From positions 1-32,247 of the forward strand of contig JAXLNO010002458.1 in the NCBI GenBank assembly GCA_038087875.1: a stretch of DNA of 32,247 nucleotides. The letters run 5' to 3'. The stretch's first letter is position 1. Every line of letters begins with the position of its first letter. The notes beneath the pieces are model-generated. The model did no database searches. It worked only from the letters and a program-made list of their open reading frames with translations, and was not told the origin of the DNA. Shown piece by piece: positions 1 to 32,246 of the stretch. The position numbers were made by a program, and so were the translations under genes. Source of the DNA: Malacoraja senta. Its lineage: Eukaryota.

Positions 1-399
1 GGTGCGGGGCCCAATTGGGAAAAAATTTCGTAGAAATATAAATAAATAATTATAAATGAGTCACGGGCCGTGAGTAACATGACAATTCGGGGTAGAGTTC
101 CTTTCACAGCGTGTGGGGTCTAGCCAGGGGTAAAGTTGCGAGGATGGAAGGAGCGTTGAGAAGGAGGGGGTCGGTGTTCATGCCAGTAACACTCACTCAC
201 CGCTGCCACGGCGCTCCGGGCGCGGAGCCACCGCATTGTGGCCGGGGAGGCAAGCAGCTCGCGTGGCTACGAGCGGCCTCCATCACCGGACAGCGGAACC
301 GACTGCCATCTCAGCGCCTTCTGACGGCCCGCTCACCTCTGGCAGTGCTCTCCGTCTGAACAGTGAGGGGACCAGCTCAAGAGCAAAGATCATAGAGCA

Positions 400-554
400 G
401 AGTGGGTCAGCGGGTGATGGATAACATCACAGCGGGCGGTGGAGCTTACTCCTGTGTCAACGCGAACAAGGGATCAATTGAGGTTACTCGCCCTGACATA
501 TGGAGTAAGCTCCACCGCCCGCTGTCCTGTTATCCATCGCCTGTTGACCCGCTC
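400..554. repeat. Long inverted repeat, 53-bp arms (also about 11037-11191)
   Basis: 400-452 versus reverse complement of 502-554: 47/53 identical. Confidence 0.9.
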
Positions 555-722
555 GAGTTGGATGATCCCCGGCCGACCCCCTCCTCAACCCTCCTGCCCT
601 CCCCGCTACTTTACCCCTGGACAGACTACCCACACGCTGTGAAATGAACTCTCTCTCCCCCCCCCCCCCCCAGCAGCGCTGTCCTTTTACTGCCGCTTCC
701 CACTTTACAGCCGCTTCCCATC

Positions 723-830
723 AGCTGCTAGCAATGAGGGATAGACTTGGCTATCCCTCAGTACAACAACATCGTTCTTGATGTTGCTGTACTGAGGGAT
801 AACAAAGTCCATCTTTCTTGGCTAATAACC
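723..830. repeat. Fold-back repeat with 22-bp core stem and 6-nt loop (also about 11360-11467)
   Basis: TATCCCTCAGTACAACAACATC-gttctt-GATGTTGCTGTACTGAGGGATA (21/22), with degenerate extension to about 51 bp. Confidence 0.9.
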
Positions 831-1510
831 TAACCTTCGGCCTCCAAGATGCGAGTACATTTTCTAGCAATGTTACAAAATTTTGAGATTTTATAAATCA
901 AGTCTGCAATTTTCTCTAACTCTGAAATTGGAGACAGACAAAAGCTGGACTAGCTCAGCAGGACAGGCAACGCAGCGACTCTGGAGAGAAGACCATTCTT
1001 CAGACTGAACTGAACTCTCGTCGGTGAGAGTACTTGTGATTGTCTGAAGAAGGATCTCGACCAGAACCGCAACCCTCTCCCCAGAGCCCCTGCCCGTCCC
1101 GCTGAGCCACCACAGACAGGGAGTTGAAGGTAGACACAGGGGGTCCACCTTCAACTTCAGAGCCAAACAAAAAACACAGAGTGCTGGAGGAACTCAGCGG
1201 GCAAGGCAGCACCTGCGGAGGAAACATATCACTTATCAGGAGCCGCCACGGGCCAGGACCCTCCCCCCCGCACCCCTCCCCCCAACAGAAAGGAACCGCA
1301 GATGCAGCCGTCACCGCACAATGTCTAAGAAGGAACTGTAGATGCTGGAAAATCGAAGATAGACAAAAATGCTGGAGAAATTCAGCGGGTGTGAAGCCCT
1401 GTCCCACTGTGCGAGTTCACCCAAGAGCTCTCCCGAGTTAAAAAAAAAATCAAAACTCGTGGTAAACACGTAGAATGAACGTAGCGGGTACGTCGGAGCT
1501 CGGAACGTTT

Positions 1511-2157
1511 CAATAGACAATAGACAATTGGTGCAGGAGCAGGCCATTTGGCCCTTCGAGCCAGCACCGCCATTCAATGTGAACATGGCTGATCATCCAC
1601 AATCAGTACCCCGTTCCTGCCTTCTCCCCATATCCCCTGACTCAGCTATCTTTAAGAGCCCTATCTAGCTCTCTCTTGAAAGCATCCAGAGAACCGGCCT
1701 CCACCGCCCTCTGAGGCAGAGAATTCCACACTCACCACTCTCTGTGAGAAAAAGTGTTTCCTCGTCCCCGTTCTAAATGGCTTACTCCTTATTCTTAAAC
1801 TGTGGCCTCTGGTTCTGGACTCCCCCAACATCGGGAACATGTTTCCTGCCTCTAGCGTGTCCAAGCCCTTAACAAATCTTATATGTTTCAATGAGATTCC
1901 CTCTCATCCTTCTAAACTCGAGAGTCTACAAGCCCAGCTGCTCCATTCTCTCAGCATATGACAGTCCCGCCATCCCGGGAATTAACCTTGTAAACCTACG
2001 CTGCACTCCCTCAATAGCAAGAATGTCCTTCCTCAAATTAGGGGACCAAAACTGCACACAATACTCCAGGTGCGGTCTCACTAGAACTCTACAACTGCAG
2101 AAGGACCTCTTTGCTCCTATATTCGATTCCTCCTGTTATAAAGGCCAACATGCCATT
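1511..2157 (-). mobile_element. CR1 LINE 3' fragment (duplicate at about 12149-12794)
   Basis: Minus-strand MLAFITGGIEYRSKEVLLQL matches the CR1 ORF2 C-terminus; CAATAGA-repeat tail. Confidence 0.9.
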
Positions 2158-2864
2158 TCTTAGCGCTAACGGCAGGTACTCGGGAAACGTGGTAACTTGT
2201 GAAGATTTTTCAACATGTTGAAAAATGTCCACATGTAAAATATACTCAGGATGTAAAAAATTTATACTTTTTAACACGTAGTCATACCGTAGTAGCTCGT
2301 GAGTTTACCGTAGTAGGACCTGGTGCCCTATATCACTATTGTATGTTCATGATGGAAATAAGAATACTCTGTATATTCATTACCTTTGAATTGTAGTTTT
2401 ATGCAATCCTCCCATAATTTCTGTTCCATTTCACAATATCTATCAGACATACAGAATGTTGCAAGGTAATATCTTGCCCAAACTCAGTTGTATCTTTCTA
2501 TCTCAATAAATATCACAAAATATGCCATTGTTTCAGCCACATTATGACAAAATATAGAATGTAGGTTATTTGTTATCAGAAATCCCATCCCAGAAACAAC
2601 AGTACTTAAAGAACATTTGTTTTACTAATTTACGAGCATGTACCATAGGTTGATCCATATCCAACAAAATGTTGTGATAATTGCATAACATGTATTGTTG
2701 TCTAAGAAATTTGGTGTGGAATGATAATCCATCTCAGTACTCATTTAGGCAAGTCCCAAACTATAGATACTTTTCCCCCACACCCAATCCCCCTCGCCCG
2801 ATCTTCATTGAACCTACCATTTGACTAATCTTTTACTCAGCTGCTGTAACGTTTCCCTCCTATC

Positions 2865-3500
2865 AAAATCTCTGTAGCATCTCTGCCCCTATCTTCCAAT
2901 TCCCACTTTGAAATAAATTACAACTTGCGACAAAAATTTCGCAGCAGGATCGCTATATAGATACAAATATATGGTATTTTATCCTAGCATCCCCCCCCCC
3001 CCCTTACCACCACACAAGAAGCGTAACTTGAAGCGTTTACGGACCAGGAATGAAAATTAATAGCTATGAATCGATTAACAGCGAGCTGCGAGGTGAGATT
3101 GAAACACCTGTCAGAGGGATAAGAAACAATCCTGAGTTGACGGCGCATTGTTTTAAGTGAGCATTTTGCAGCGACCTCGCCATATTCTGGTCAAATATTC
3201 TTTCCACGGAAATCTCCTATTTCACTTTGAAATTATATTCATTTATAACTGTTTGTAACATCAGTAACCACCTTAATGTTCGTGCGTTTAGTACTGGGTA
3301 TGCTTGAAACTATTTATTGTAATGTACTGTATCTTAAAAAAAAAACTATATCAACTAGTTTTTACACTGAATCGAACGATGATTGAAAATGCGTGGGAAT
3401 CGACTAATCGCGATCCTGCTGCAAATTGTTTAAGTCGAAATCTGTATTTTATTTCAAAGTGGGAATTTGAAGATGGGACAGAGATGCTACCAGAGATTTT
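2865..3500. mobile_element. MITE-like element with about 90-bp TIRs, superfamily unassigned (duplicate 13501-14146)
   Basis: 2865-2953 (AAAATCTCTGTAGCATCTCTG...GCAGCAGGATCGC) is an imperfect inverse of 3410-3500. No clear TSD. Confidence 0.7.
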
Positions 3501-3663
3501 AAGCTCTTGTGTGAACTCGCACAATGGGACAGGGCTTGAGGCAGCATCCATGGAGTGAAGGAAATAGCCGGGTCTGAAGAAGGGTTTTGACCCGAAACGT
3601 TGCATATTTCCTTCGCTCCATAGATGCTGCCTCACCCGCTAAGTTTCTCCAGCATTTTTGTAT

Positions 3664-3845
3664 ACCGCAAAACGTCAATGATTCCGGGAATGCCGAGAGA
3701 GCTAGAGTGGTGGGGAACGGGAGAGAGAGAGCGCGCACGGGAGAGAGAGCGCACGGGGGAGAGAGAGCCGCGAGAGAGAGAGGGAGGGAGAGAGCGAGAG
3801 ACAGAGAGACACAACGTGGGTCGGTAGGTAAATTGAATGACTATA
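3664..3845 (+). repeat. GA-rich interspersed segment X; its 5' part is at about 1283-1325
   Basis: Homologous to the reverse complement of about 22620-22810. Confidence 0.85.
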
Positions 3846-3884
3846 TTACTTTTCATGATAATGGCAGACTGATTATTGCAGAAG

Positions 3885-4280
3885 TGTTTCTTTGTAGAAC
3901 GTGTTTTATTGCGCTCTTCATAAATGGGGATTAACGTTATGCCAAAATGGAAAGCTAAGAATCAATATTTGGGGAAGAGGCCCCTGCAAATGCCCATCCA
4001 TGTGAAATCCTTTGGTCTGGACCAGGATTTAACCTGTTCACTGCAAATAATTGTTTTCTTTTTTCACTTGTATACTCTGACCCGAGTATACTCTGGGTGG
4101 CACTGAATGGGTTAATTCTATCCAGCGAGGATAGGGGGTTGTGGTATTTAACATCACTTGGTTTGAAGGTGATCCTTTTCATGCACCCAGTGGTCTGGTA
4201 GAATAATGTACACTTGTTGCATTATCAGTCAGAATGTCAGGCTACTGACCCAGAAACATGTTCAAATCTCTCTGTTGGAG
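3885..4280 (-). other. Candidate 3'-terminal exon: short phase-1 coding tail (x)PTERFEHVSGSVA* plus 3' UTR
   Basis: Acceptor TTCATATTTCAATTCCCCAG| at 4280, TGA at 4237-4239, AATAAA at 3905-3910. Gene identity unknown. Confidence 0.45.
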
Positions 4281-5616
4281 CTGGGGAATTGAAATATGAA
4301 TCATTAGAATAAATCAAAAATGTTTGATTAAAAGAAATGTTTGTCTTGGTGGCTCAGTGGCTGGTAAAACACGTTATCCGTGTCCGGGTCTCCGTTCTCC
4401 GCTCGCTCCTCATTAGGCCGGCACGGCAGGCCGCCTTGCACATGCGCATTGTTACGGCCAGCACGTCCTCCCCTGCACATCCGCACATCATCGGCCGCCC
4501 TGCGCATGCGCACTGCCACGGCAACTGGTCAGCGCCGGGCACTTTCTCCCTCGCTTTGAATTGTGGGAGATTTGGCCGCCATTGCTGCCTCGCCGCAACC
4601 GCTGAAAACTAACACAGAATCACTCCCTGACCCTGGATCAGGAGTATCTCCCTGGAGTAACTCTCGCTTCTGGTTTCCTGATCCTCCATAAACATTCTAA
4701 AAGGAATTTAAACTGGAGGTGGTAGAGGGCTGAACAATAACAGCCTATTGCATTTTATCTGTTTATGTATTGTGTATATATATGGTCTATGGTATATAAA
4801 CACACTGAACTTTTATCTCCTGTTCTGTATTATGTTCACATATTCTGTTGTGCTGCAGCAAGCAAGAATTTCATTGTCCTATCTGGGACACATGACAATA
4901 AAACTCTCTTGATTCTTGACTTGGACTTAAGCAAAAAAGGGTTCTTTGGGGAAAAAAAGGTACCTTAAATTTAGTTGCGTCTGGTTGGGTAACTATGGTA
5001 GGGTGAAGAATATTCCATGCTTTAATTGTGCGGGGGAACTCCACGGAGCAGCCAGCAACTCAGGATAGAAGAAATTGGGTGACGTTTCGGGTAGATACCC
5101 TTCTTTAGACTCCCTCTGGTTTTAGTGTCTTTAGTTTAATTTAAAGACAGCGTGGAAACAGGCCCTTCAGGCCACCGAGTCCACGCCGACCATTGATCAC
5201 CCGTACACTAGTTCTTTCCCACACATTAGCGAAGTAAGTCAAGAGTCAAGAGTGTTTTATTCTCTCACGTCCCAGTTAGAACAATGAAATCCTTACTTGC
5301 AGCAGCACAACAGCATATGTAAACATAGTACTCTGTAAACAATGTTATAAACGAGAAAACAAAACGGTGTATATTTATATATGAATATATAACTATATAA
5401 ATATATATGTGTGTGTGTGTATTAAATATATACCCACACACACATACAATTTCCCACCTGGGATTAATAACGTTCTATTGTATAGTATCGTGTGTGTAGG
5501 AAGGAACTGCAGATGCTGGTTTAAACTGAAGATAGACACAAAAAGCTGGAGTAACTCAACAGGTCAGACAGAATCTCTGGACAAAAGGAAAATATTACGT
5601 TTTGGGTTGGGTCTGA

Positions 5617-6561: not shown

Positions 6562-8712
6562 GTTTTTTTTTTTTTTTTTTTTTTAATTATTTTTATTAGA
6601 AGTACGGTAAATTACAGTAATACACAACACTTATATCTTAATACATTTTTTATACCGCTTCATTTTTTTGAGCTTTAAGAGAAAGATAGAAGTAAGAAAA
6701 GTAAAGAAAGTGCGCAAGAGTCGTGAGGTGCAAGAGAGTGTTGTGAAAAGAAAGCCCCTTAGAAAAGAAGTTAGAGAAGGAAGTAAAGTAAGAAAGTAGA
6801 TCCTAGAAAAGAAAGAAAAAAAAGTAGGAACAATCGCAGAAAGGGAACCACCGACCAAGTCTGTTTTTATTGTTTTATCTCCCATTACCAGGTCCTGATA
6901 CCATTTCTTTCTTTCTTTATTTTTTAAATTACTATTGCACCTCATGCTTGTAATAGGTCCAAAAACGTAGACCACGTCTTTTGGAATTGGTCTGCTTTCC
7001 CTGCTAAGAGGAATCTCATCTGTTCCAGATGTAATGTTTCCAACATATTTGATGTCCACATTTTTATTGTTGGTGTGGGCGCATTTTTCCAGAATTTAAG
7101 TATGAGCCTTTTTCCCATTATTAGCCCGTAATTGAATAAGTTCTTCTGATACACGTTTAATTCAGGGATACCTTCCGATATTCCAAAAATGATCCATTCT
7201 GGTTTTGGTACCAGTTTTATTTTAATTAATTTTGAGAAAATATCAAATATTTCATACCAAAATTTTTGGATTTTTGTACAAAAAACAAAAGAATGCGCTA
7301 TGGTAGCTTCTTGACATAGACATTTATCACAGATTGGTGAAACATTAGGAAAGATTTTATTTAATTTAGTTTTTGAATAATATAGTCTATGTAATGTTTT
7401 GAATTGGATGAGCGTATACGTTGATCGAACATTTATGCACCTGTAGTAAGTGGTTATCCCAGCTCTCTTTTGAAATTTTTATAGCTAATTCTTGTTCCCA
7501 GTCTCTTCTAATTCCTTCTGTTGTGGGTATTTCTATGTTTAAAATGATATTATATAATACGATATTAGATTAGCTGATTCCGCCTTTGTCTTCATTGCTT
7601 CATCTAGTAAGTGGGAAGGCATATTATGATAGTCTTTTGTGCATTTTTTCAGGTAATCACGAATTTGTAGATATTTAAAATATTGATTATTTTTCAGATT
7701 ATATTTCAGTTGTAGTTGTTGAAATGATAGTAATTTTCCCAATTCATACAGATCTTCGAGCGTTTTGATTCCCATTCTTTCCCATTGTATAAATGATTTG
7801 TCTATGGTTGAGGGTTTAAACGATGGGTTATTAACTATTGGTATTGAGAGAGATAGGTTTCTTAATTTTAGATTCTGTTTTATTTGTTTCCATGTTCTAA
7901 TTGTGCTATTTATAATTGGGTTTTTATTATAAATTTTATTATTCAAATTTATTGGAGAGAGAATAATCGCTCCTATATTACTCGGGGAACAGTCCCCTTT
8001 TTCCATTATAATCCAGTCCACCTGCTGGGCAGAATTGTCCAGCAGGTGAATCATATTTTTAATATTTACTGCCCATTTATAATACATAAAGTTAGGGAGC
8101 GCGAGACCCCCCAACTCTTTTCATTTATTAAGGTGTGCTCTTTGTATTCTATGGGATTTATAATCCCATATAAAATTTGTAATGTCTGAGTCCAATTTTT
8201 TGAAAAACTTTTTTGGGAGATATATAGGTATTGATTGAAATAGGTATAGGATTTGTGGTAAGAAAATCATTTTTATAGCATTTATTCTGCCTATTAAGGA
8301 CATCGGAAGTGTTTTCCAAAATGTAATCATATTATTTAATTTCTTAAGTAAGGGATTATAATTGGCTTTAAACATATCCTGGTAATTTCTAGTAATTTCA
8401 ATTCCCAAATATTTGAATTTTTCTATAGCTATTTTAAAGGGGAATTTCCTGAGGTGTGTTGAGTCTTTTGGTTTTATCGACATAATTTCACTTTTGTTCC
8501 AGTTTATTCTATATCCTGAAAAGGATCCAAAGTCCTCAATTAAATTTAATATATTTGGTATACTAATTTGTGGTTTTGTGATGTACAATAGTACATCATC
8601 GGCATATAACGATATTTTGTTATTTGAATATTTTGTATTATAACCGTAGATATCCATGTGTGTTCTTATTTTTTCAGCAAGGGGTTCAATTACTAAAGCA
8701 AATAACAGCGGT
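6562..8712 (-). mobile_element. L1 LINE, 5'-truncated, ORF2 disrupted
   Basis: Poly(T) at about 6562-6583; SLYADDVLLY, FKYLGI and GGLALPNF motifs split over several frames. Confidence 0.93.
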
Positions 8713-9244
8713 TTAGTTTGTAGTTTTATTTAAAGCAGAAATAATATGCGAGTGCTTCACTGAGTATAATTCCGACAGGTAACTATGCACTTCGTCCAAG
8801 CACATTATCGCACGCGCCATGCAAGCCATCTTAAATAACCACCTAAACTGTAATTTGGCAACTTAAAAGCTGCCAAGGTTGCCCGGCTGACAACAGAGAA
8901 AAAAAATTAAGTGAGAGCCCTGCAAGGTGTATAGGCCTTTCTTACATATGCTGTCACAACGCACTGTAGTCTCTAAACAACCCTTCAGTAATTTTCCTTG
9001 CCCTCCATTTCAGAATAATAGTGTTTTAAGCCAATAACTCGACACTAGCACAGGCAATAAATAAATAAATAAATAAAGCCCAGCTTTCCAGCCCCTTATC
9101 TCATTGGCCACGCTCGGCTGCAAATCGGTGTCAATCTGGTGGACCATCTTCCTCTAGTCGTGGGGGTGGGGGATTGGGGCGGGGGGCTCACAAGTGGAAC
9201 AGTTTAGGGCCTCTCTTCATCTAAATCCGTCCCTGCTGGTAGGT

Positions 9245-9645
9245 TTCAATGAGATTTCCCCCTCATCCTTCTAAATCCCACGAGCACAGGCACAGAGACT
9301 TCAAACATTCCTCATACGTTAAATCAATCATCTCCAGGACATACTTCCTCTGGACCCTCTCCAAAGCCAGCACATCCTTTCTAATATGGAGCCCAAAACT
9401 GCTCACAATATTCCAAATGTGTCCTCACCAGTGCCCGATAAATCCTGAGCATTATATCATTGTTTTTATATTCTAGGCCCCCCGAAATGAATGCTGGCAT
9501 TGCATTTGCCTTACTTACCACCGACTCAATTTGCAAGTGAACTATTTGGGAATCCTGCGCTAGTACTCCCACTTTGTAGCTCAAATAGTCTACGTCTTTA
9601 TTCCGACTGCCAAAATGTAAAACCAGACACTTACTACACTGTATT
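9245..9645 (-). mobile_element. CR1 LINE ORF2 fragment
   Basis: KCLVLHFGSRNK...MLRIYRALVRTHLEYCEQFWAPY. Confidence 0.9.
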
Positions 9646-9667
9646 CCATTTGGCTCTGCTTTGCCCA

Positions 9668-9955
9668 CTTAGTGGAACTGCTGCCTTACAGCGCCAGAGA
9701 CCCGGGTTCAATTCTAACTACGGGTCCCGTCTGTACAGAGTTTTGTACCTTCTCCCCGGGACTTGCGTGGGTTTTGCCTGGATCTCCGGTTTCCTCCGTC
9801 AGTCCAAAGACACACAGGTTGGTAGGTTAATTGGCGTGGTATAATTGTAAATTGTCCCCTAATAAGTAAGATAATATAAGTGTGCAGGGATCGCTGGTTG
9901 ACGCAGACTCGGTGGGCTGAAGGGCCGGGTTTCTGCGCTGTATCTCTTAAACTAA
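9668..9955 (+). mobile_element. V-SINE/HE1-like SINE
   Basis: tRNA-like head, GTGGGTTT..C.GG.T.TCCGGTTTCCTCC core, CR1-like tail ending CTAAA. Confidence 0.88.
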
Positions 9956-10014
9956 AACCACATTCCATTGACTATCAATAATTCTGGGCAATTAGATAAC
10001 CACAAATTATTAAT

Positions 10015-10328
10015 GGGTGGCACAGTGGCGTAGCGGTAGAGCTGCTGCCTTACTGCGCCAGAGACCTGGGTTTGATACTGACTACAGGTGCTGTCTGCAA
10101 GGACATTGTATGTTCTCCCTGTGACTGCGTGGGTTTTCTCCGGGTGCTTCGGTTTCCTCCCACACTACAAAGACATACAGGCTTGTAGGTTACTTGGCTT
10201 AGGTAAAATTGTAAATTGTCCCCAGTGTGTTGGTTAGTGTAAATGTACGGGCTGATCACTGTTCAGCGTGGACTCAGTGAGCTGAGGGGCCTGTATCTGC
10301 ACCATATCTCTAAAGTTTAAAGTCTAAA
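10015..10328 (+). mobile_element. V-SINE/HE1-like SINE, near full length
   Basis: GGGTGGCACAGTGGCGTAGCGG head, V-domain core, TCTAAAG tail. Confidence 0.9.
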
Positions 10329-10420
10329 TGCACAGCTTAGTTAAGAGTGTGTTGAGGCTGTTATTTCAGTCCAGGAGGTTTATTGTCTCAAGTGATCAGC
10401 CTCATTGACTTGCCACTTAC

Positions 10421-10620
10421 CCTGTGGAACATTGACTCCCTGCAGCAGAGTTGCATGTTCGATGTAACAGGAGAATTTTGCCACATCTTCTCTACTCAGT
10501 TGAATTGTATTCTTCAGCTGGTAAGTCCCATCCCAATTGGGCAACAGATCACTGGATTCAGACTCGTGGTCTCCCTCACCATCTCTCAGCCACGTTACAT
10601 CGATGGCCCGTGGGTAGAAG
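10421..10620 (-). pseudogene. MHC class I(-like) alpha-3 domain exon, 5'-truncated by a DNA transposon end
   Basis: Manual translation without stops: FYPRAIDVTWLRDGEGDHESESSDLLPNWDGTYQLKNTIQLSREDVAKFSCYIEHATLLQGVNVPQ, then phase-1 donor G|GTAAGT. FYPxxIxVTWLRDG, LPNxDGTYQ and F/YSCxxxH are class I alpha-3 (C1-set) hallmarks. The B-strand Cys half is missing. Confidence 0.88.
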
Positions 10621-11960
10621 CAGGGCCGGCCTTAGGAGGTGCGGGGCCCAATTGGGAAAAAAATTCGTAGAAATATAAATAAATAATTATAAATGAGTCA
10701 CGGGCCGTGAGTAACATGACAATTCGGGGTAGAGTTCCTTTCACAGCGTGTGGGGTCTAGCCAGGGGTAAAGTTGCGAGGATGGAAGGAGCGTTGAGAAG
10801 GAGGGGGTCGGTGTTCATGCCAGTAACACTCACTCACCGCTGCCACGGCGCTCCGGGCGCGGAGCCACCGCATTGTGGCCGGGGAGGCAAGCAGCTCGCG
10901 TGGCTACGAGCGGCCTCCATCACCGGACAGCGGAACCGACTGCCATCTCAGCGCCTTCTGACGGCCCGCTCACCTCTGGCAGTGCTCTCCGTCTGAACAG
11001 TGAGGGGACCAGCTCAAGAGCAAAGATCATAGAGCAGAGTGGGTCAGCGGGTGATGGATAACATCACAGCGGGCGGTGGAGCTTACTCCTGTGTCAACGC
11101 GAACAAGGGATCAATTGAGGTTACTCGCCCTGACATATGGAGTAAGCTCCACCGCCCGCTGTCCTGTTATCCATCGCCTGTTGACCCGCTCGAGTTGGAT
11201 GATCCCCGGCCGACCCCCTCCTCAACCCTCCTGCCCTCCCCGCTACTTTACCCCTGGACAGACTACCCACACGCTGTGAAATGAACTCTCTCTCCCCCCC
11301 CCCCCCCCAGCAGCGCTGTCCTTTTACTGCCGCTTCCCACTTTACAGCCGCTTCCCATCAGCTGCTAGCAATGAGGGATAGACTTGGCTATCCCTCAGTA
11401 CAACAACATCGTTCTTGATGTTGCTGTACTGAGGGATAACAAAGTCCATCTTTCTTGGCTAATAACCTAACCTTCGGCCTCCAAGATGCGAGTACATTTT
11501 CTAGCAATGTTACAAAATTTTGAGATTTTATAAATCAAGTCTGCAATTTTCTCTAACTCTGAAATTGGAGACAGACAAAAGCTGGACTAGCTCAGCAGGA
11601 CAGGCAACGCAGCGACTCTGGAGAGAAGACCATTCTTCAGACTGAACTGAACTCTCGTCGGTGAGAGTACTTGTGATTGTCTGAAGAAGGATCTCGACCA
11701 GAACCGCAACCCTCTCCCCAGAGCCCCTGCCCGTCCCGCTGAGCCACCACAGACAGGGAGTTGAAGGTAGACACAGGGGGTCCACCTTCAACTTCAGAGC
11801 CAAACAAAAAACACAGAGTGCTGGAGGAACTCAGCGGGCAAGGCAGCACCTGCGGAGGAAACATATCACTTATCAGGAGCCGCCCACGGGCCAGGACCCT
11901 CCCCCCCCGCACCCCTCCCCCCAACAGAAAGGAACCGCAGATGCAGCCGTCACCGCACAA
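10621..11960 (+). mobile_element. hAT-like non-autonomous DNA transposon, one end (right boundary uncertain)
   Basis: Starts CAGGGCCGGCCTTAGG, sharing 14 nt with the element end at 19911. CAGGG termini are typical of hAT. No transposase, partner TIR or TSD found. Confidence 0.6.
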
Positions 11961-12033
11961 TGTCTAAGAAGGAACTGTAGATGCTGGAAAATCGAAGATA
12001 GACAAAAATGCTGGAGAAATTCAGCGGGTGTGA

Positions 12034-14182
12034 AGCCCTGTCCCACTGTGCGAGTTCACCCAAGAGCTCTCCCGAGTTAAAAAAAAATCAAAACTCGTGG
12101 TAAACACGTAGAATGAACGTAGCGGGTACGTCGGAGCTCGGAACGTTTCAATAGACAATAGACAATTGGTGCAGGAGCAGGCCATTTGGCCCTTCGAGCC
12201 AGCACCGCCATTCAATGTGAACATGGCTGATCATCCACAATCAGTACCCCGTTCCTGCCTTCTCCCCATATCCCTGACTCAGCTATCTTTAAGAGCCCTA
12301 TCTAGCTCTCTCTTGAAAGCATCCAGAGAACCGGCCTCCACCGCCCTCTGAGGCAGAGAATTCCACACTCACCACTCTCTGTGAGAAAAAGTGTTTCCTC
12401 GTCCCCGTTCTAAATGGCTTACTCCTTATTCTTAAACTGTGGCCTCTGGTTCTGGACTCCCCAACATCGGGAACATGTTTCCTGCCTCTAGCGTGTCCAA
12501 GCCCTTAACAAATCTTATATGTTTCAATGAGATTCCCTCTCATCCTTCTAAACTCGAGAGTCTACAAGCCCAGCTGCTCCATTCTCTCAGCATATGACAG
12601 TCCCGCCATCCCGGGAATTAACCTTGTAAACCTACGCTGCACTCCCTCAATAGCAAGAATGTCCTTCCTCAAATTAGGGGACCAAAACTGCACACAATAC
12701 TCCAGGTGCGGTCTCACTAGAACTCTACAACTGCAGAAGGACCTCTTTGCTCCTATATTCGATTCCTCCTGTTATAAAGGCCAACATGCCATTTCTTAGC
12801 GCTAACGGCAGGTACTCGGGAAACGTGGTAACTTGTGAAGATTTTTCAACATGTTGAAAAATGTCCACATGTAAAATATACTCAGGATGTAAAAAATTTA
12901 TACTTTTTAACACGTAGTCATACCGTAGTAGCTCGTGAGTTTACCGTAGTAGGACCTGGTGCCCTATATCACTATTGTATGTTCATGATGGAAATAAGAA
13001 TACTCTGTATATTCATTACCTTTGAATTGTAGTTTTATGCAATCCTCCCATAATTTCTGTTCCATTTCACAATATCTATCAGACATACAGAATGTTGCAA
13101 GGTAATATCTTGCCCAAACTCAGTTGTATCTTTCTATCTCAATAAATATCACAAAATATGCCATTGTTTCAGCCACATTATGACAAAATATAGAATGTAG
13201 GTTATTTGTTATCAGAAATCCCATCCCAGAAACAACAGTACTTAAAGAACATTTGTTTTACTAATTTACGAGCATGTACCATAGGTTGATCCATATCCAA
13301 CAAAATGTTGTGATAATTGCATAACATGTATTGTTGTCTAAGAAATTTGGTGTGGAATGATAATCCATCTCAGTACTCATTTAGGCAAGTCCCAAACTAT
13401 AGATACTTTTCCCCCACACCCAATCCCCCTCGCCCGATCTTCATTGAACCTACCATTTGACTAATCTTTTACTCAGCTGCTGTAACGTTTCCCTCCTATC
13501 AAAATCTCTGTAGCATCTCTGCCCCTATCTTCCAATTCCCACTTTGAAATAAATTACAACTTGCGACAAAAATTTCGCAGCAGGATCGCTATATAGATAC
13601 AAATATATGGTATTTTATCCTAGCATTCCCCCCCCCCCCCCCCTTACCACCACACAAGAAGCGTAACTTGAAGCGTTTACGGACCAGGAATGAAAATTAA
13701 TAGCTATGAATCGATTAACAGCGAGCTGCGAGGTGAGATTGAAACACCTGTCAGAGGGATAAGAAACAATCCTGAGTTGACGGCGTATTGTTTTAAGTGA
13801 GCATTTTGCAGCGACCTCGCCATATTCTGGTCAAATATTCTTTCCACGGAAATCTCCTATTTCACTTTGAAATTATATTCATTTATAACTGTTTGTAACA
13901 TCAGTAACCACCTTAATGTTCGTGCGTTTAGTACTGGGTATGCTTGAAACTATTTATTGTAATGTACTGTATCTTAAAAAAAAAACTATATCAACTAGGT
14001 GTGAAAATTACACTGAATCGAACGATGATTGAAAATGCGTGGGAATCGACTAATCGCGATCCTGCTGCAAATTGTTTAAGTCGAAATCTGTATTTTATTT
14101 CAAAGTGGGAATTTGAAGATGGGACAGAGATGCTACCAGAGATTTTAAGCTCTTGTGTGAACTCGCACAATGGGACAGGGCT
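12034..14182. mobile_element. Duplicate of the Harbinger-like element and its nested contents
   Basis: Same TIRs and TGA TSD inside copy A'. Confidence 0.85.
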
Positions 14183-14529
14183 TGAGGCAGCATCCATGGA
14201 GTGAAGGAAATAGCCGGGTCTGAAGAAGGGTTTTGACCCGAAACGTTGCATATTTCCTTCGCTCCATAGATGCTGCCTCACCCGCTAAGTTTCTCCAGCA
14301 TTTTTGTATACCGCAAAACGTCAATGATTCCGGGAATGCCGAGAGAGCTAGAGTGGTGGGGAACGGGAGAGAGAGAGCGCGCACGGGAGAGAGAGCGCAC
14401 GGGGGAGAGAGAGCCGCGAGAGAGAGAGGGAGGGAGAGAGCGAGAGACAGAGAGACACAACGTGGGTCGGTAGGTAAATTGAATGACTATATTACTTTTC
14501 ATGATAATGGCAGACTGATTATTGCAGAA

Positions 14530-14927
14530 GTGTTTCTTTGTAGAACGTGTTTTATTGCGCTCTTCATAAATGGGGATTAACGTTATGCCAAAATGGAAAG
14601 CTAAGAATCAATATTTGGGGAAGAGGCCCCTGCAAATGCCCATCCATGTGAAATCCTTTGGTCTGGACCAGGATTTAACCTGTTCACTGCAAATAATTGT
14701 TTTCTTTTTTCACTTGTATACTCTGACCCGAGTATACTCTGGGGTGGCACTGAATGGGTTAATTCTATCCAGCGAGGATAGGGGGTTGTGGTATTTAACA
14801 TCACTTGGTTTGAAGGTGATCCTTTTCATGCACCCAGTGGTCTGGTAGAATAATGTACACTTGTTGCATTATCAGTCAGAATGTCAGGCTACTGACCCAG
14901 AAACATGTTCAAATCTCTCTGTTGGAG
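14530..14927 (-). other. Duplicate of the candidate terminal exon
   Basis: Acceptor at 14927, TGA 14884-14886, AATAAA 14551-14556. Confidence 0.45.
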
Positions 14928-15346
14928 CTGGGGAATTGAAATATGAATCATTAGAATAAATCAAAAATGTTTGATTAAAAGAAATGTTTGTCTTGGTGGC
15001 TCAGTGGCTGGTAATACAACTGAATTGGTGCAAAATGGGGGAATCTGCAGTCCATACCTGATCCACTCTCAATGAGTCTCCAAACTCACCCTTGTGGTTT
15101 ACTCTAGACTCTGAGGGCGTCTAAGTACCACGTCACCAAAGCAAATAACTAAATTGAAAATAGCTCAATCCAATCCCGAAACCAGAAAGGGGCCCACAGA
15201 AGGTACAGGCGATTCCTCACCAGTTCGCTGCTTGCCCTTCTCTCTCCTCATCGAGCATCTCTCATCTTCTCAACACATGCCTTTGCTGAATCTTTCTATT
15301 GGCACTTTGACAGAGGTGGATACAGAGGCAACACCAGTACTCAACT

Positions 15347-18300
15347 TTTTAAAATTTCAAAATAGACTTTATTCAGGTAATAAATATATACAATACATGA
15401 ACCGTGCGACAAATTCATCCGACATTTTCGGAGGCTATACAAATTGTTCAATGCAGTTTATATACATTTCTCACAAATCTGTCCCCCACCCGTGCCACTC
15501 ATGTGCCCCCCTGGCGTGGCATACCTTCCCTTATTTTGAGGGGCGTCTCCACCATACCGTGCCCCCCATGTCCAGCAGCGGGAGGACCCTAGACTGTGGT
15601 CCTCCCCCACCGAGCCTTGGCGTTGGCTGCACCGAGCTTCAGTGCGTCCCTCAGCACGTACTCCTGCAGTCTGCAGCGGGCCAGTCGGCAACATTCCCTG
15701 ACGGACATCTCGCTCTGCTGGGTGGTGAACAACGCTCGGGCAGACCAAAGAGCATCTTTCACCGAGTTGATGACCCTCCAGCAGCATTCGATGTCCGTCT
15801 CTGAATGTGTCCCTGGGAACAGTCCGTAAACCAGAGTTCTCTGTGACGGAGCTGTTCGGGATAAAGCGTGCCAGGGATCCCTGCATACTCCTCCAGACTC
15901 TTTTTGCAAATCCACACTCTGAGAAGAGGTGGGCAACCGTCTCCTCTCCATAGCAGCCGTCCCGAGGGCAGCGTGCGCTGGCAGTGAGGTTCCGACGGTG
16001 CAGGAAGGATCTGACTGGGAGGGCTCCCCTCACCGCCAGACAAGCCAGGTCTTCGTGCTTGTTGGTGAGTTCTGGCGATGAGGCATTTTGCCAGACAAGC
16101 TGGGCAGTCTGCTCTGGGAACCACGCCACCGGATCCATCGAGTCCTTTCCCTGCAGTGCCTGCATTACGTTCCGTGCTGACCACTGCCCAATGGACATGT
16201 GGTCAAAGGTGTTGGTCCGGAAGAACCTTTCCACAAACGACAGATGGGGCGGCAATGTACAGCTGACTGACTGTGTGGCATCTGCGTTAGGCCCATCCTT
16301 CGCAACACCGGGGACAGGTAGAACCTCAGCAGGTAGTGACACTTGGTGCCCACGTGCCTTGGCTCTACACTCCGCCTGATGCAGCCACACACAAAGGTGG
16401 CCATCAGGGTGAGGGCGACGTTGGACACGCTTTTATCCCCGTTGTCTGCTGACTTGTACATTGTGGCCCGGTTCACCCGGTCTATCCTCGACCCCCAGAT
16501 GAACTGGAAGACAGCCCGGGTGATCCCTGTGGCGTAGGAGGGAGGGACAGGCCACACTTGCGCCAAGTACAGCAGCCCCGAGAGCACCTCACACCTGATG
16601 TCCACATTTTTTCCGGTTATGGAGAGGGAGCGTTGCCTCCACAGCTCCTGCTTCTTCCCCACCTTGGCTATCCGCTTCAGCCAATTCTTGTAACACGCCT
16701 CAGCCCGCCCGAACCAGATCCACAGCACCTTCAAGAAGTCAGGCTTGATGGTAAAGGGGACGGAAGATTGGTCGGGCCAGTTGCCAAAGAGCATGGCTTC
16801 GCTCTTCCTGCGGTTCACCCTGGCTCCCGTGGCCGACTCAAACTGGTCGCAGATGCTGATCAATCTGCGGACCGACCCTGGATCCGAGCAGAAGACAGCG
16901 ACATCGTCCATGTACAGGGAGGTTTTGACTTGAATGGGTCTGGGGAATGTTATTCTCGTGTTGGTTGCCTTCAAGTCTCGCAATGTCACTCCTCTTATGC
17001 TCACATCCTTCCTGATGGACTCGGCAAAAGATTCAATACAGCAGACAAACAAGACAGGAGAGAGAGAGGGCACCCCTGCCTGACTCCAGACCTTACAGGG
17101 AAACTGTCTGATTCCCACCCATTGATTTGGACTGCACTACGGATATTGGTGTAGAGCAGTTTGATCCAATTTCGGATTCCCTCCCCAAAACCCATTTTGG
17201 AGAGCACGTCCCTCATGTACGTGTGCGATATCCTGTCGAAGGCCTTCTCCTGGTCCAAGCTGACTAGGCAGGCATCCACCCGTCTGTCCTGCACGTAGGC
17301 GATGGTATCTCTCAACAGCGCGAGGCTGTCTGAGATTTTCCTGCCAGGTACAGCACAGGTTTGGTCCGGGTGGATCACCTATCCCAGAGCAGACTTGACC
17401 CGGTTGGCGATGGCCTTAGACAGGATCTTGTAATCTACATTCAACAATGTGATGGGTCTCCAATTCTTTATGTCCTTCATCTCCCCCTTCTGCTTGTAGA
17501 TTAGGGTGATGCTGCCCTTCCTCATGGAGTCTGACATGCTGCTGGCTAGTAGCATGTCATTGTACATTTCCCGCAGGTCCGGGCCCACCCAGTCCCACAG
17601 AGCCGAATACAACTCGGCCGGTAAGCCATCGCTTCCGGGAGTTTTACTCGAGTCAAAGGAACGGATGGAGCCAGTCAGCTCCTCTCGGGTCAGTGGTTGG
17701 TCCAGACTCTCCCGCTTGCTGTCCTCTAAGACCTCCGTGATAGAGGACAGGAAGTTCTGGGAGGCGGTGCTGTCCGTGGCCTTTTTGTCATACAAATGCG
17801 TGTAAAAGGATTTGCAGATCCTCAGCATGTCCGTCTGCGAGGATGCTACCGAGCCGTCCTCCTCCCTAAGGCTGTTCGTCACAGAGCTCCCCCTGTGAAC
17901 CTTATGGAAGAAGAAACGTGAGCACGTCTCATCCTGCTCCACATGGCGGACCCTGGATCAGAAGATGATCTTGGAGGATTCAGAGGTAAAGAGCCAAGCT
18001 TGCCGGTCCTTCACCTCTCTAAGTTCCTCCCTCACATCCACCCCTCTCGACTGCAGAAGGAGCAGTTGTTGCAAATGTGTCTGGAGTTGGCACAATTCCC
18101 TCTGTCTTGCTCTCTGAACCCCTTTAACTAAGAAGAACCTCTTAATGTTCTCGTTGGTTGCTTCCTACCAGAGTGTCGGGGAGTCAAAGAGGGGCTTCAC
18201 CGTTCTCCAACATGCGTAGTTCTTCAATGTTCTCTGGGGTTAACAGCTTCATATTTAACTTCGACGTCCCTCTGCCTGCCTTCTGGTCCTCCTGTAGGTT

Positions 18301-18356
18301 ACAGGAAGCCTGAAGGAGGCAGTGGTCAGAGAAGAACACTGGCGTGAGGTCAGTGT
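15347..18356 (-). mobile_element. Tx1-type (L1 clade) retrotransposon, 5'-truncated, frameshifted ORF2
   Basis: TPVFFSDH (EN end), KTPGSDGLP, SLDQEKAFDRISH, GVRQGCPLS, TSLYMDDV, C-terminal CPRDGC...ETVAHLFSEC. Candidate TSD CTCAACT at 15340-15346 / 18357-18363. Confidence 0.92.
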
Positions 18357-19147
18357 CTCAACTGTCCCCAAAGTCTGTCCCTTAGTGGTGGTTTGTGAAG
18401 AGCTGTGGGCACCTGTCAGATGGGCTGGTCCTGTCCTTGTCACCTTTGGGTCTGGGGAATGTTATTCTCGTGTTGGTTGCCTTCAAGTCATTTCTATTAA
18501 TGTGGGAGAGCTATGCGCATGCACTAGCGACATGATCTTCATTGGCTGGAGACGTGAAGCCCTGTGGCAGGTAAAAGGCCAAGATGGATGGATATAGATG
18601 TCTAGTTCTCTGTAGCATGCATCCATTTGTGCAGCAGTACACATTCAGTAATCCCCTTCCACATCCACAAGCGTGATAGTCTGGTTTGCTGGCTGCACTG
18701 AGACTGAAAACATTTCTGAATGGAGCAGGGAATCTCCTTCATACTTTATCTTGTGTGACAATCTCCTGCTTGAGGCTTCTCACACCCTTCGATGCTTGTT
18801 TGTGGGGCGCGGGAGATGAGGAAATGACTATAATGGTACACAATCTTGTGATTGTGCAGCACTTTACTGGAAATAGTTAATAGAATTCTTGCCTTTGCCT
18901 CAAATTTAACATGGGGATGAATTAAATTGTGGAGACAGAGTGGGAGAATGTTCTGCCCTAACGGAGAGGATTTGCATCACATTCTTCCTGCCTTCATGTG
19001 CAGTACACAGGGTGGCACGGTGGCACAGTGGCACAGGTGCTGGAGCTGCTGCCTCACAGGGTTCCATCCGGATTGTTTTTTTGTTCAGTTTAGAGATATA
19101 GAGTACAAACAGGCCCTTCAGCGCACCGATTCCGCACCGACCAATAT

Positions 19148-19301
19148 NNNNNNNNNNNNNNNNNNNNNNNNNNNNNNNNNNNNNNNNNNNNNNNNNNNNN
19201 NNNNNNNNNNNNNNNNNNNNNNNNNNNNNNNNNNNNNNNNNNNNNNNNNNNNNNNNNNNNNNNNNNNNNNNNNNNNNNNNNNNNNNNNNNNNNNNNNNNN
19301 N
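19148..19301. other. Assembly gap, 154 N
   Basis: Run of N, flanked on the left by SINE pieces. Confidence 1.
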
Positions 19302-19544: not shown

Positions 19545-20201
19545 CTGCAGAAAATTGGGAAACAGCTGAAGACAGAGAAAATATAATATCAAAAACTGAC
19601 AGGAGGTTAATCTAGGTAGCTCGAGGTAGAAAACTTGCAGATATTTGAGAGAGATATTTGAGAGATTTTTAATCTTGTATTTGGACTTCACTTCATTACT
19701 GCTCTTTGCAAAGCCTCTTGTTAATCCTATTTCAACCCTAAATTCTTTTAGTGGTGTTACTTTTGGTCAAGTTGGGTGAAAATCCACAGCATTCACTGGA
19801 CTGATAACATACGATGGGGAATGTGTGGAATTCCCTTTGTGCTTTTCTGTATCTTCCACTTATGGTGTACCACATTTGTGTCGTTTTGTGCTCTACGCTA
19901 GTGGTGTATTCAGGGCCGGCCTTAAGCCGATTGGACCGATTGCTCCCAATTGGGCTTCGCGCCAGTGGGGGGCCCGCGCTAATTTTCCGTATTTCGTACT
20001 TAAATACGAATTCGCGTTGCTAAATACAATAAAAAAAAAAAAAAACATTTGCCTTGTTAAATACGGATTTTTTTTTTTTAAACGAACATGGATAAAATCC
20101 ACTGCACCGGCCATCAGATATAAATGTGTTAACTACCAGCACGTTAACAGCCAGTAGTTAACACGTAGTTATACAATGTGTCATCAATTAATCGATCCAC
20201 A

Positions 20202-22411
20202 AACATACCTTGATATGTTCTGGTAATTTCGATTCCCAAGTATTTAAATTTTTCTGTAGCTATTTTAAAAGGGAATTTTAAAAGATGTGTTGAATCTTTC
20301 GGTTTTATTGACATAATTTCACTTTTATTCCAATTTATTCTATATCCAGCAAAAGATCCAAAGTCTTCAATTAAATTTAATATATTTGGTATAGTGATTT
20401 GAGGTTTTGTAATGTACAATAATATATCATCCGCGTATAAAGATATTTTATTATATGAGTCTTTAGTATTATATCCATGGATATCAGGGTGTATTCTTAT
20501 TTTTTCTGCTAGCGGTTCAATAATGAGAGCAAACAGCTGTGGTGATAATGAGCATCCTTGCCTATTTCCCCTTGATAGTTGGAATTTTGACTCCCTACTT
20601 AATAAATTAAACACACTAATTAAATTCTGGAAAACGCTCCCGATGTCTTTAATAGGCCGAATAAACGCAATAAAAATGATCTTTCTACCACAAATTTTAT
20701 ACCTATTTCAATCAATTCCTATATACTTACCAAAGAAGTTTAAAAAAAAACTCGACTCAGATATCACTAATTTTATATGGGACTATAAATCACATAGAAT
20801 ACAAAAAACTCATCTGAATAAACCTAAAGTATTAGGGGGTTTAGCACTACCTAATTTTATGTATTATTATTGGTCAGTAAATATTAAAAATATGATTCAA
20901 CTGATGGATAACTCCGCCCAGCAAGTGGACTGGATTGTAATGGAGAAAGAGGATTGCTCCTCTAGAAACATTGGAGCGATCCTCCTTTCTCCAATGAAAT
21001 TGAATAACATAAATTATAATAAGAACCCAATTATTCATAGTACAATCCGAATTTGGAAACAAATAAAACAAAACTTAAAATTAAGAAATTTATCACTTTT
21101 ATTACCTATGGTTAATAACCCTTCGTTTAATCCTTCTATTATAGATAAAGCTCATACACATTGGGATAGACTAGGAATTAAAACGCTTGGTGACTTGTAT
21201 GAAACTGGAAAATTACTTTCATTTCAACAATTACAAATAAAATATAAACTCGGAAATAATCAATATTTTAAATATGTTCAAATATGCGACTATTTGAAAA
21301 AATATACAAAAGATCATTATAATAACCCAGTAGATGTATTGGACGAGGCAATGCAGATAAAAGCGGAATCAGCAAACTTAATATCATATTTGTATAATAT
21401 TATCTTAAATGTACAAATACCATCTACGGAGGGTATCAGAAGAGACTGGGAACAAGAGTTAGCTATTAAAATTTCAAAGGAAAGTTGGAATGAATACTTA
21501 TTAAACGTGCATAAATGCTCGATTAATGTAAGACACACTTTAAAATTTTACATAGATTATATTATTCGAAAACTAAAATTCATAAAATTTTCCCAAATGT
21601 ATCATCTATTTGTGATAAATGTCAATCCCAAGAAGCTACTATAGCGCACTCATTCGTTTTCTGTACAAAAATTCAAAAATTTTGGAATGAAATTTTTGAA
21701 ATCTTTACAAAGTTATTTAAAACAAGACTGATACCCAAAGCAGAATGGATTATCTTCGGAATAAAGGAAGATGGTCCAGAACTAAATGTGTTTCAAAAGA
21801 AACTAATGGACTATGGGTTAATAACTGGAAAAAAGCTCATTCTAAAATTTTGGAAGAAGGCTCCAATACCAACTATAAATATGTGGATTTCAAATTTCAA
21901 ACATTACACCTAGAAGAGATAAGACTCCTCCTAGCAGGTAAACCAGATCACTTCCACCTGACGTGGTCTGCATTTATAGAATTATTACAAATATAGGGTG
22001 CAAAAGTACTTAAAAAAAAAAAAATTGAGGTCAGGTAAGAGGGGATGATAGTTGAAGAGTTGGTATGTCCCATTTACGTAATGCTCATAAAAATATTTGT
22101 TTCTCTCTTTTTCCTCTTTCTCTTTCTCTTTCTTTTCTAGGGCCTATTTCTTAACTCTTTTTCTTTTGTTTTTAATTTTGCTCTTATAGGGTCTTCGTCC
22201 TTTTTTGTTGTCACATTTTCTACACTTTCACTTTTTCCTTCACTTTCTTCTTTCTTTCAATCTTTTCCTTTTCTAGTGTAAAAAATAAATGGAGTACATT
22301 AATTGTACGAGGATATAAATGACGAGTACTAATGTATGCGGTTGTAATGTAATGTACTTCTAATAAATAAATAAAAAATAAAAAAAATTAAAAAAAAAAA
22401 ATTAAAAAAAA
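20202..22411 (+). mobile_element. L1 with 5' inversion (20202-20593 inverted, 20594-22411 sense), poly(A) and 16-bp TSD
   Basis: TSD AATTAATCGATCCACA at 20186-20201 and 22412-22427. Inverted part encodes ESKFQLSRGNRQG...LYADD...RTYQGMF; sense part resumes at LLNKLN. Confidence 0.95.
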
Positions 22412-30365: not shown

Positions 30366-32246
30366 CTAGCAGAATTGGGAGAATTCAACGTTCAGGCCAC
30401 CAGGATGTAGACTGCCCAAGCGGAATATGAGGTGCATTTCCTCCAATTTACGGTGTTGCTCGCTGTGGCCATGGAGGAGACCCAGGACAGAGAGGTCAGA
30501 TACGGAATGGGAGGGGGAGTTGAAGTGCTGAGCCACCGGGAGTTCAGGTTGGTTATTGCGGACCGACCGGAGGTGTTCGGCGAAACGATCGCCAAGCCTC
30601 CGCTTGGTCTCACCGATGTAGATCAGCTGGCATCTAGAGCAGCGAATGCAATAGATGAGGTTGGAGGAGATGCAGGTGAACCTCTGTCGCACCTGGAACG
30701 ACTGCTTGGGTCCTGGAATGGAGTGGAGGGGGGAAGTGAAGGGACAAGTGTTGCATCTCTTGCGGTTGCAAGGGAAAGTACCAGGGGAGGGGGTGGTATG
30801 GGAGGGAAGGGAAGAATTGACAAGGGAGTTACGGAGGGAGCGGTCTTTGCGGAAGGCAGACATAGGGGGAGATGGGAAGATGTGGCGAGTGGTGGGGTCA
30901 CGTTGGAGGTGGCGAAACTGACGGAGGATCACTTGTTGTATGTGACGGCTGGTGGGGTGAAAGGTGAGGACTAGGGGGACTCTGCCTTTGTTGTGAGTGG
31001 GGGGATGGGGAGAGAGAGCAGTGTTGCGGGGTATGGCAGAGACCCTGGTGCGAGCCTTATCTATGGTGGAGGAGGGGAACCCCCGTTCCCTGAAGAATGA
31101 GGACATTTCAGATGCCCTGGTGTGGAACGCCTCATCCTGGGAGCAGATGCGGCGTAGACGGAGGAATTGGGAGTGGGGGATGGAGTCCTTACAGGAAGCA
31201 GGGTGGGAAGAAGTGTAGTCCAGATAGCCATGGGAGTCGGTAGGTTTGTAGTGGATGTCGGTAAGGAGTCTATCACCTGCGATGGAGATAGTGAGGTCAA
31301 GGAATGGTAGGGAAGTGTCGGAAATGGTCCAGGTGTATTTGAGTGCCGGATGGAAGTTGGTGGTGAAGCGGATGAAGTCAGTCAGTTGTGTGTGGGTGCA
31401 GGATGTGGCACCAAAACAATCATCGATGTAGCGGAGGTAGAGGTCGGGGATGGGGCCCTGGTACGCATTGAACAGGGATTGTTCTACGTACCCGACAAAG
31501 AGGCAGGCGTAGCTGGGGCCCATGCGTGTGCCCATAGCTACGCCTTGTATTTGGAGGAAATGGGAGGAGTCAAATGAAAAGTTATTAAGTGTAAGTACCA
31601 GCTCCGCTAGGCGGAGGAGGGTGTCGGTGGCCGGGTATAGATTGCTTCTACGGTCGAGGAAAAAACGGAGGGCTTTGAGACCATCCTGGTGGGGGATGGA
31701 GGTGTACAGTGACTGGACGTCCATGGTGAAGATGAGGGGGTGAGGGCCTAGAGAGTGGAATGCGCGGAGATGACGGAGAGTGTCTGAGGTGTCTTGAACA
31801 TAGGTGGGGAGGGATTTAACCAAGGGGGATAGTATGGAGTCGAGGTAGGTGGAGATGAGTTCGGTGGGGCAAGAACAGGCAGAGACAATGGGTCTACCGG
31901 GACAGTCAGGTTTGTGGATTTTGGGAAGGTAAAAGCGGGCTGTGCGGGGCTGGGGAACGATGAGGTTGGAGGCTCGTTCGGGCAGGGCGTGGGAGTGGAT
32001 GAAGTTGGTGATGGTGCTGGAGATGGTGGCCTGGTGCTCGTCAGTGGGGTCATGGTCCAGGGGTAAGTAGGAAGAGGTGTCCGAGAGTTGGCGCGTGGCC
32101 TCAGCTTTGTAGAGGTCGACGCGCCAGACTACCACGGCACCTCCCTTGTCGGCGGGTTTGATAACCCAATCTAGGTTGTTGCGGAGTGAGTCGATGGCAG
32201 TGCGTTCAAGGGGGGAGAGATTGGAGTGAAACAGGGGAGTGGAGAA
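30366..32246 (-). CDS. Penelope-like RT + GIY-YIG endonuclease, 5'-partial, uninterrupted
   Basis: Frame open upstream of the 589-aa ORF to the window edge (IKPADKGGAVV). DVQSLYT, QIQGVAMG, YLRYIDD, linker CNRKRCNTC, LIYIGET...RFAEH. Confidence 0.93.
   Translation of the reverse strand, partial: FSTPLFHSNLSPLERTAIDSLRNNLDWVIKPADKGGAVVVWRVDLYKAEATRQLSDTSSYLPLDHDPTDEHQATISSTITNFIHSHALPERASNLIVPQPRTARFYLPKIHKPDCPGRPIVSACSCPTELISTYLDSILSPLVKSLPTYVQDTSDTLRHLRAFHSLGPHPLIFTMDVQSLYTSIPHQDGLKALRFFLDRRSNLYPATDTLLRLAELVLTLNNFSFDSSHFLQIQGVAMGTRMGPSYACLFVGYVEQSLFNAYQGPIPDLYLRYIDDCFGATSCTHTQLTDFIRFTTNFHPALKYTWTISDTSLPFLDLTISIAGDRLLTDIHYKPTDSHGYLDYTSSHPASCKDSIPHSQFLRLRRICSQDEAFHTRASEMSSFFRERGFPSSTIDKARTRVSAIPRNTALSPHPPTHNKGRVPLVLTFHPTSRHIQQVILRQFRHLQRDPTTRHIFPSPPMSAFRKDRSLRNSLVNSSLPSHTTPSPGTFPCNRKRCNTCPFTSPLHSIPGPKQSFQVRQRFTCISSNLIYCIRCSRCQLIYIGETKRRLGDRFAEHLRSVRNNQPELPVAQHFNSPSHSVSDLSVLGLLHGHSEQHRKLEEMHLIFRLGSLHPGGLNVEFSQFC

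Follow-up and report, generated by a model that had tools for sequence, protein, structure and literature searches.

Remnant of a non-classical MHC class I alpha-3 exon cut where a repeated element begins in Malacoraja senta

In mammals and amphibians, pseudogene fragments of MHC class I genes occur as isolated scraps of exon and intron, left over from duplicated genes and lying amid transposable elements. Among the class Ib lineages of elasmobranchs, UDA, UFA and UGA are single- or low-copy, and UFA and UGA are CD1-like (PMC10751288, PMC12562908). The MHC genes of skates are known on unplaced scaffolds (PMC10751288). Here we describe a scrap of exon and intron in a 32,247-nucleotide stretch of DNA from the skate Malacoraja senta (contig JAXLNO010002458.1, assembly GCA_038087875.1), which is referred to below as the window. 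The first-pass annotation of this DNA had recognized a hidden alpha-3 exon that is cut at a hAT-like transposon end, and had proposed that a recent, transposon-associated event destroyed a divergent class I paralogue, possibly within a rearranging class I cluster. Our analyses revealed a genuine class I pseudogene scrap of the ordinary kind, located at a repeat terminus, in surroundings that are rich in transposons and may be mis-assembled. It shows no essential difference from ordinary class I pseudogene fragments, and it derives from a non-classical lineage of the skate. The mechanism proposed previously, with a hAT element, a recent event and a rearranging cluster, goes beyond what the evidence carries.

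The closest described genes are two loci of the little skate, Leucoraja erinacea, with which the window was compared: L001, the locus of XP_055486430.1 (P0005), and L002 (JAMYXN010000412.1), the locus of XP_055486496.1 (P0004). Both proteins are annotated as 'MHC class I-related gene protein-like' by NCBI. The window and these loci share the end of the alpha-3 exon, its phase-1 donor and the next intron. The search for an intact paralogue was successful at L001, where alpha-1, alpha-2, a complete alpha-3 and a single TM/cytoplasmic exon extend over 12 kb (Table 1), whereas in the window only the 3' two thirds of alpha-3 are left, followed by about 1.2 kb of intron. L002 also shows decay: its alpha-2 exon contains an in-frame stop (EKD*VKW), and one codon is deleted from its alpha-3 (11716-12090 and 13945-14217). 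Its protein, P0004, looks like a mis-modelled pseudogene, and the N-terminal 90 residues of the model are not class I-like.

The minus strand of the window at 10422-10619 encodes 66 codons with no stop. The resulting peptide, FYPRAIDVTWLRDGEG...FSCYIEH...VNVPQ, displays the alpha-3 hallmarks FYP..I.VTWLRDG, LPN.DGTYQ and FSCYIEH. Besides these whole codons, the remnant includes the phase-1 base G at 10421 and the last base of a Gly codon at 10620. The exon ends in CAG G/GTAAGT at 10424-10415, where the slash marks the splice point, and thus in phase 1 with a GT donor, which is the same end as that of the P0005 exon on L001. The coordinates and the description of the stop-free codons and of the donor (GTAAGT, 10420-10415) in the first-pass annotation are therefore correct. 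Approximately the first 26 codons of alpha-3 are absent. The Trp of strand C (in VTWLRDG) and the second Cys (in FSCYIEH) are kept, while the first Ig cysteine and strands A-B were lost by the truncation. A C1 domain deprived of strands A-B and of its first cysteine could not fold.

The remnant peptide matches the Pfam C1-set profile with an E value of 7.9e-10. When all PDB chains were searched with phmmer, every one of the best 60 matches listed was an alpha-3 domain of the class I family, the top match being 9ch4_A (E 2e-15) and the next ones MR1, CD1, classical class I and ZAG. The beta-2-microglobulin domains within the same fusion chains scored about 15 bits, against 35-58 bits for alpha-3. 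The remnant is thus a C1-set domain that matches class I alpha-3 above beta-2-microglobulin. The assignment to class I alpha-3, and not to the beta-2 domain of class II or some other Ig C1 domain, is upheld, at a level well above chance.

Among 1.84 billion representative proteins searched with HMMER, the best single-domain matches are the two L. erinacea class I proteins, P0004 with 88% protein identity to the remnant (E 1.5e-29) and P0005 with 85% (E 3.1e-29). Over the 66 residues, the identity is 85-88% in skate, 65-70% in other rays, 48-58% in sharks and at most 47% in other class I lineages. These values fall from skate to other rays to sharks and track the species tree, and the remnant lies inside an elasmobranch lineage. 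A maximum-likelihood alpha-3 tree, built from these 66 residues only, unites the remnant, P0004 and P0005 in one clade with an ultrafast bootstrap of 100, and contains the batoid-plus-shark lineage with values of 85-94. The peptide search and the tree against class I lineages, both suggested by the first-pass annotation, thus led to the two little-skate proteins, and a remnant that is 85-88% identical to annotated genes does not fit its designation as a divergent paralogue.

In a search with the P0005 protein, sawfish, manta, stingray and a dozen sharks each yielded what is apparently a single gene, with identities of 54-72%, and the identity then drops to at most 36% (at most 34% across most of the query) for 'F10 alpha chain-like' genes. 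The members come from Pristis, Mobula, Hypanus, Pristiophorus, Heptranchias, Scyliorhinus, Stegostoma and other genera. The nearest solved structure for the lineage is PDB 9ch4 chain A, which P0005 matches with an E value of 2.9e-60; a literature search on '9CH4' returned nothing relevant. As judged from these protein comparisons, the remnant derives from a paralogue specific to skates, within an ancient non-classical class I lineage of elasmobranchs. Each of the other shark and ray species appears to have a single gene of this lineage, and skate has at least three copies, of which two are decayed. The multicopy character expected earlier is thus seen in skate, and the remnant represents one more unannotated pseudogene scrap, and a small data point on the birth and death of class I paralogues in cartilaginous fish. 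Alpha-3 ends in (V/I)PQ in all ray and skate members of the lineage, and in a conserved ...W in the shark members and the other class I lineages.

At the DNA level, the paralogy continues into the intron: window 9682-10621 aligns with L001 20010-19071 at 89.9% identity, and window 9236-9552 with L001 20532-20217 at 92.5%. This extension indicates that the scrap arose as a genomic duplicate and not as a retrocopy. The intron remnant includes an old LINE/SINE piece that is common to L001. Altogether, about 1.4 kb of the gene survives, made up of the final 200 nucleotides of the alpha-3 exon, the donor and roughly the first 1.2 kb of the intron. At its far (3') side the relic has no sharp edge and fades out at about 9160-9236 within a diverged repeat, and the TM exon is absent beyond it.

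The rest of the gene was not found in the window. When five class I proteins were compared with the 32 kb by tblastn, 10422-10619 was the only exon match, and alpha-1, alpha-2, the 5' part of alpha-3 and the TM exon were detected nowhere else in it, in agreement with the earlier report that the missing exon half is absent. No L001-specific DNA occurs in the window outside 9236-10621, and the matches of the window to the remaining intron, the TM exon and the 6-kb alpha-2-to-alpha-3 intron of L001 are multicopy interspersed repeats only. A candidate for the missing half, 'SCCLTGFHP' at 19044-19139 by the N gap, was dismissed as a chance match, as its tblastn E value is 0.7 and no alpha-3-like sequence lies upstream. 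The ordered set of leader, alpha-1, alpha-2, complete alpha-3 and TM that makes up a functional class I gene is not present in the window. Since the window is devoid of any other class I exon, we regard the scrap as an orphaned relic and not as a gene that was broken only recently. The notion of a rearranging class I cluster must also be seen in this light: no second class I exon is present, and the remainder of the window is retrotransposon debris.

Table 1. Positions of the features in the window and of the exons of the little-skate locus L001
Feature	Position	Strand	Basis or remark
Window			
Alpha-3 exon remnant, non-classical MHC class I, 3' 200 nt	10421..10620	-	Translation, Pfam, PDB, homology
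Consensus splice donor GTAAGT (GT = 10420-10419)	10415..10420	-	Directly after exon remnant
Alpha-3-to-TM intron remnant, about 1.2 kb	9236..10414	-	Colinear with L001 19274-20532, 90-92% identity
Element, terminal 110 nt, starting with CAGGGCCGGCCTTAGG; GC-rich palindromic subterminal part GGGCCCAATTGGG	10621..10730	+	Outer end adjoins exon remnant
Foldback MITE-like element, inverted arms of about 80 nt (10731-10811 and 11210-11289)	10731..11289	.	Nested 110 nt inside element
Diverged second terminus copy: CAGGGCCGGCCTTAAG, 36-nt insertion, AGTGGGGGGCCC	19911..20200	+	Left flank GGTGTATT; LINE fragment from 20201
4.4-kb interspersed-repeat mosaic, second copy of window 1-4371	10638..15018	+	Starts 17 bp past break
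First copy of 4.4-kb segment	1..4371	+	Window begins 17 nt inside element; left flank beyond window
L001			
Alpha-1 exon	10003-10263		Exon mapping
Alpha-2 exon	12701-13021		Exon mapping
Alpha-3 exon	~18998-19273		Exon mapping
TM/cytoplasmic exon, single	~21941-22174		Exon mapping

On the other side of the relic, the homology to both paralogue loci stops at 10621, in the middle of the exon. A repeated element, CAGGGCCGGCCTTARG, begins at this base and runs rightwards, and a second copy of it lies at 19911. The paralogues read ...ACAGGC/TTC where the window reads ...CCCTGC/TTC (the slash here precedes the first whole codon), which assigns base 10620 to the exon and makes 10621 a one-base overlap with the element. 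The 16-mer terminus recurs at 19911 on the same strand with one mismatch, against a chance expectation of 0.21 at up to three mismatches. The similarity of the two copies starts from the same first C, 15 of the 16 bases are alike, and the left flanks are unrelated; beyond the 36-nt indel, a GC-rich block is common to both. Because the exon homology is lost and the repeat homology starts at one and the same nucleotide, the cut lies at a repeat terminus and a random mis-join is unlikely. The junction between exon and terminus is probably natural, and the exon is indeed cut exactly at the first base of the element, as had been claimed. L001 and L002 are intact at the cut site and neither has the element, so the truncation is specific to the copy in the window. 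Exact-product look-ups with two open reading frames that span the junction gave no match.

Ac-type hAT transposons have ends that resemble a CAGGG start. With the hAT superfamily (Ac, hobo and Tol2 type), the element shares its 5'-CAGGG start, which conforms to 5'-(C/T)AG, a first base common to two or more copies whose flanks are unrelated, and a GC-rich palindromic subterminal sequence. It departs from that superfamily in three features that were looked for in the window and not found: an inverted partner terminus, an 8-bp target duplication and a transposase. On the reverse strand of the window, no inverted partner of the 16-nt terminus was found at up to three mismatches; the matches at four to five mismatches are at chance level, and the far end of the element may lie beyond the window. 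The octamer GGTAGAAG, expected as the 8-bp target-site duplication, occurs once in the window, in line with the earlier observation, and the flank of the 19911 copy, GGTGTATT, recurs at 20488 with no terminus beside it. A Pfam search of ten open stretches (10771-14845 and 19780-20154) found no transposase; the sole BED match, 14.7 bits over 16 residues, is below the cut-off and falls within a SINE-like motif. Hence, the 'hAT-like' transposon end proposed earlier has in its favor the CAGGG start and flanks that exclude TA or TTAA duplications, but no inverted partner, 8-bp duplication, transposase or credible BED domain came to light. Judging by its terminus, the element resembles the end of a cut-and-paste transposon, and its assignment to hAT is unproven.

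Ends of the Tc1/piggyBac and Helitron types were rejected, because the flanks are not TA, TTAA or A/T. The arms of the nested foldback element are 96% complementary over their outer 24 nucleotides, and it contains a second palindrome at 11037-11191.

The DNA past the break repeats the first 4.4 kb of the window almost exactly, which had been overlooked. The two copies are direct duplicates 10.6 kb apart, with 99.54% identity by BLAST. A global alignment shows 12 differences in the 4.4 kb, comprising eight homopolymer-length indels, one complex indel of 7 nt and about three substitutions. The duplicate ends at 4371/15018, where the two right flanks differ, with no re-convergence within the window, and its 3' edge (...GGCTGGTAA) bears no recognizable transposon-type end. 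Either this segment was duplicated very recently, or one stretch of DNA entered the assembly twice. As the sequence beyond the break is nearly identical to the start of the window, mis-assembly to the right of the junction is a live alternative. If the DNA was assembled twice, the sequence right of the junction may not be truly contiguous with the exon, and the 'missing' upstream exons may sit elsewhere, for instance past the true far end of the element.

We consider it likely that the scrap is a non-functional orphan relic of a skate paralogue, belonging to the old elasmobranch non-classical class I lineage with the 'MR1-like' annotation, and cut at the end of the element. A gene copy would have been duplicated from L001/L002-type genes, and a mobile element would then have landed in, or broken at, exon 4 of the copy seen in the window. 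Alpha-1, alpha-2 and the start of alpha-3 on the upstream side, and the TM exon on the downstream side, would have been separated or lost by further insertions, deletions or rearrangement in this retrotransposon-rich region. An assembly artefact is the unlikely case that the junction, or more likely the continuity through the following 4.4-kb segment, is a mis-join or a false duplication, and that the real gene is intact or interrupted by a single insertion, with the second half of the exon at the far end of the element. The 12 differences between the duplicates, with their eight homopolymer indels and about three substitutions, are the pattern of one sequence assembled twice; moreover, the first base of the window already lies 17 nt within the element, an N gap is present at 19148-19301, and skate MHC genes occur on unplaced scaffolds (PMC10751288). 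However, a random mis-join would not hit the exact base where an independent copy of the element begins, the right flanks of the duplicates differ and never re-converge within the window, and the duplicate leaves unexplained why, at the opposite side of the relic, the TM exon and the remaining intron are missing as well. Another explanation, to which we give a low probability, places the break at the edge of a segmental duplication or at a rearrangement breakpoint, where the scrap was carried or cut by a duplication or deletion and the boundary happened to coincide with the element end, with no insertion into the exon. The near-identical duplicate begins no more than 17 nt from the break and ends without a transposon-type end, and the scrap is orphaned on both sides; yet the break coincides with the terminus of a repeat family that is also present at 19911 in an unrelated flank. 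Should the duplicate instead be real and very young, the same element family may be actively breaking and duplicating DNA in a region of non-classical class I genes, perhaps through alternative transposition with the ends of different copies, and the cut in alpha-3 would then be a fresh footprint of MHC-Ib cluster remodelling. The probability of this scenario is lower still.

It is very improbable that the gene fragment was the cargo of a Pack-type hAT element. The outer end of the element (CAG...) adjoins the exon and its body runs away from it, as at 19911, which makes the exon a flank and not cargo. The only match resembling a terminus on the other side of the relic, at 9220-9235 by the edge of the class I homology, has 12 of 16 bases and was rejected as a partner, since it is of chance-level quality and aligns with an old repeat that is also in L001. 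The least credible proposal, which we regard as nearly negligible, is that the remnant still serves as an exon, which could be spliced to an upstream exon if the element provided a cryptic acceptor. An open frame of 83 codons crosses the junction (10631-10383), and the element contains a putative, pyrimidine-rich acceptor (...CCTCCTAAG up to the splice point; 10622-10634, minus strand) that lies 11 nt upstream of the remnant and would keep the phase-1 frame. Against such use, the window has no class I exon upstream or downstream, the domain is without its first cysteine and A-B strands, and the few word matches in RNA runs are explicable by 31-mers common to the expressed paralogues.

The exon of the relic differs from that of L001 at 14 of 198 sites and from that of L002 at 14 of 195 (93% identity), the intron identity is 90-92%, and the overall DNA divergence from the nearest paralogues is 7-10%. 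The dN/dS ratio between the remnant and the paralogues is 0.46-0.72, calculated from only 14 differences, which are too few to be informative on selection. In neutral simulations with 7-14 random substitutions, 55-73% of the runs leave the 66 codons open. Neutral decay would therefore leave such a frame, and the open frame says nothing on use or recency; together with the intact donor, it is a leftover and not a sign of use. The recent destruction proposed in the first-pass annotation does not fit these data, since the divergence is 7-10%, neutral frames often stay open, and the relic has also lost its TM exon and the remainder of the intron.

The practical value of the locus lies in a warning: with the duplicate, the N gap and the unplaced scaffolds, claims on copy number and on a 'rearranging cluster' in this region need long-read validation. 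The surroundings of the relic are debris of LINE and Penelope-type reverse transcriptases. A LINE with RVT_1 and zf-RVT domains occupies 15115-18594 on the minus strand, starting about 100 nt after the duplicated segment. LINE fragments at 6912-8690 and 20201-22024 share 79-85% identity, partly in direct and partly in inverted orientation to each other, and the latter fragment starts 290 nt after the start of the second terminus copy. At 30369-32246 on the minus strand, a 626-codon open stretch with a reverse transcriptase and a weak GIY-YIG match corresponds to a Penelope-like retroelement, which runs off the end of the window.
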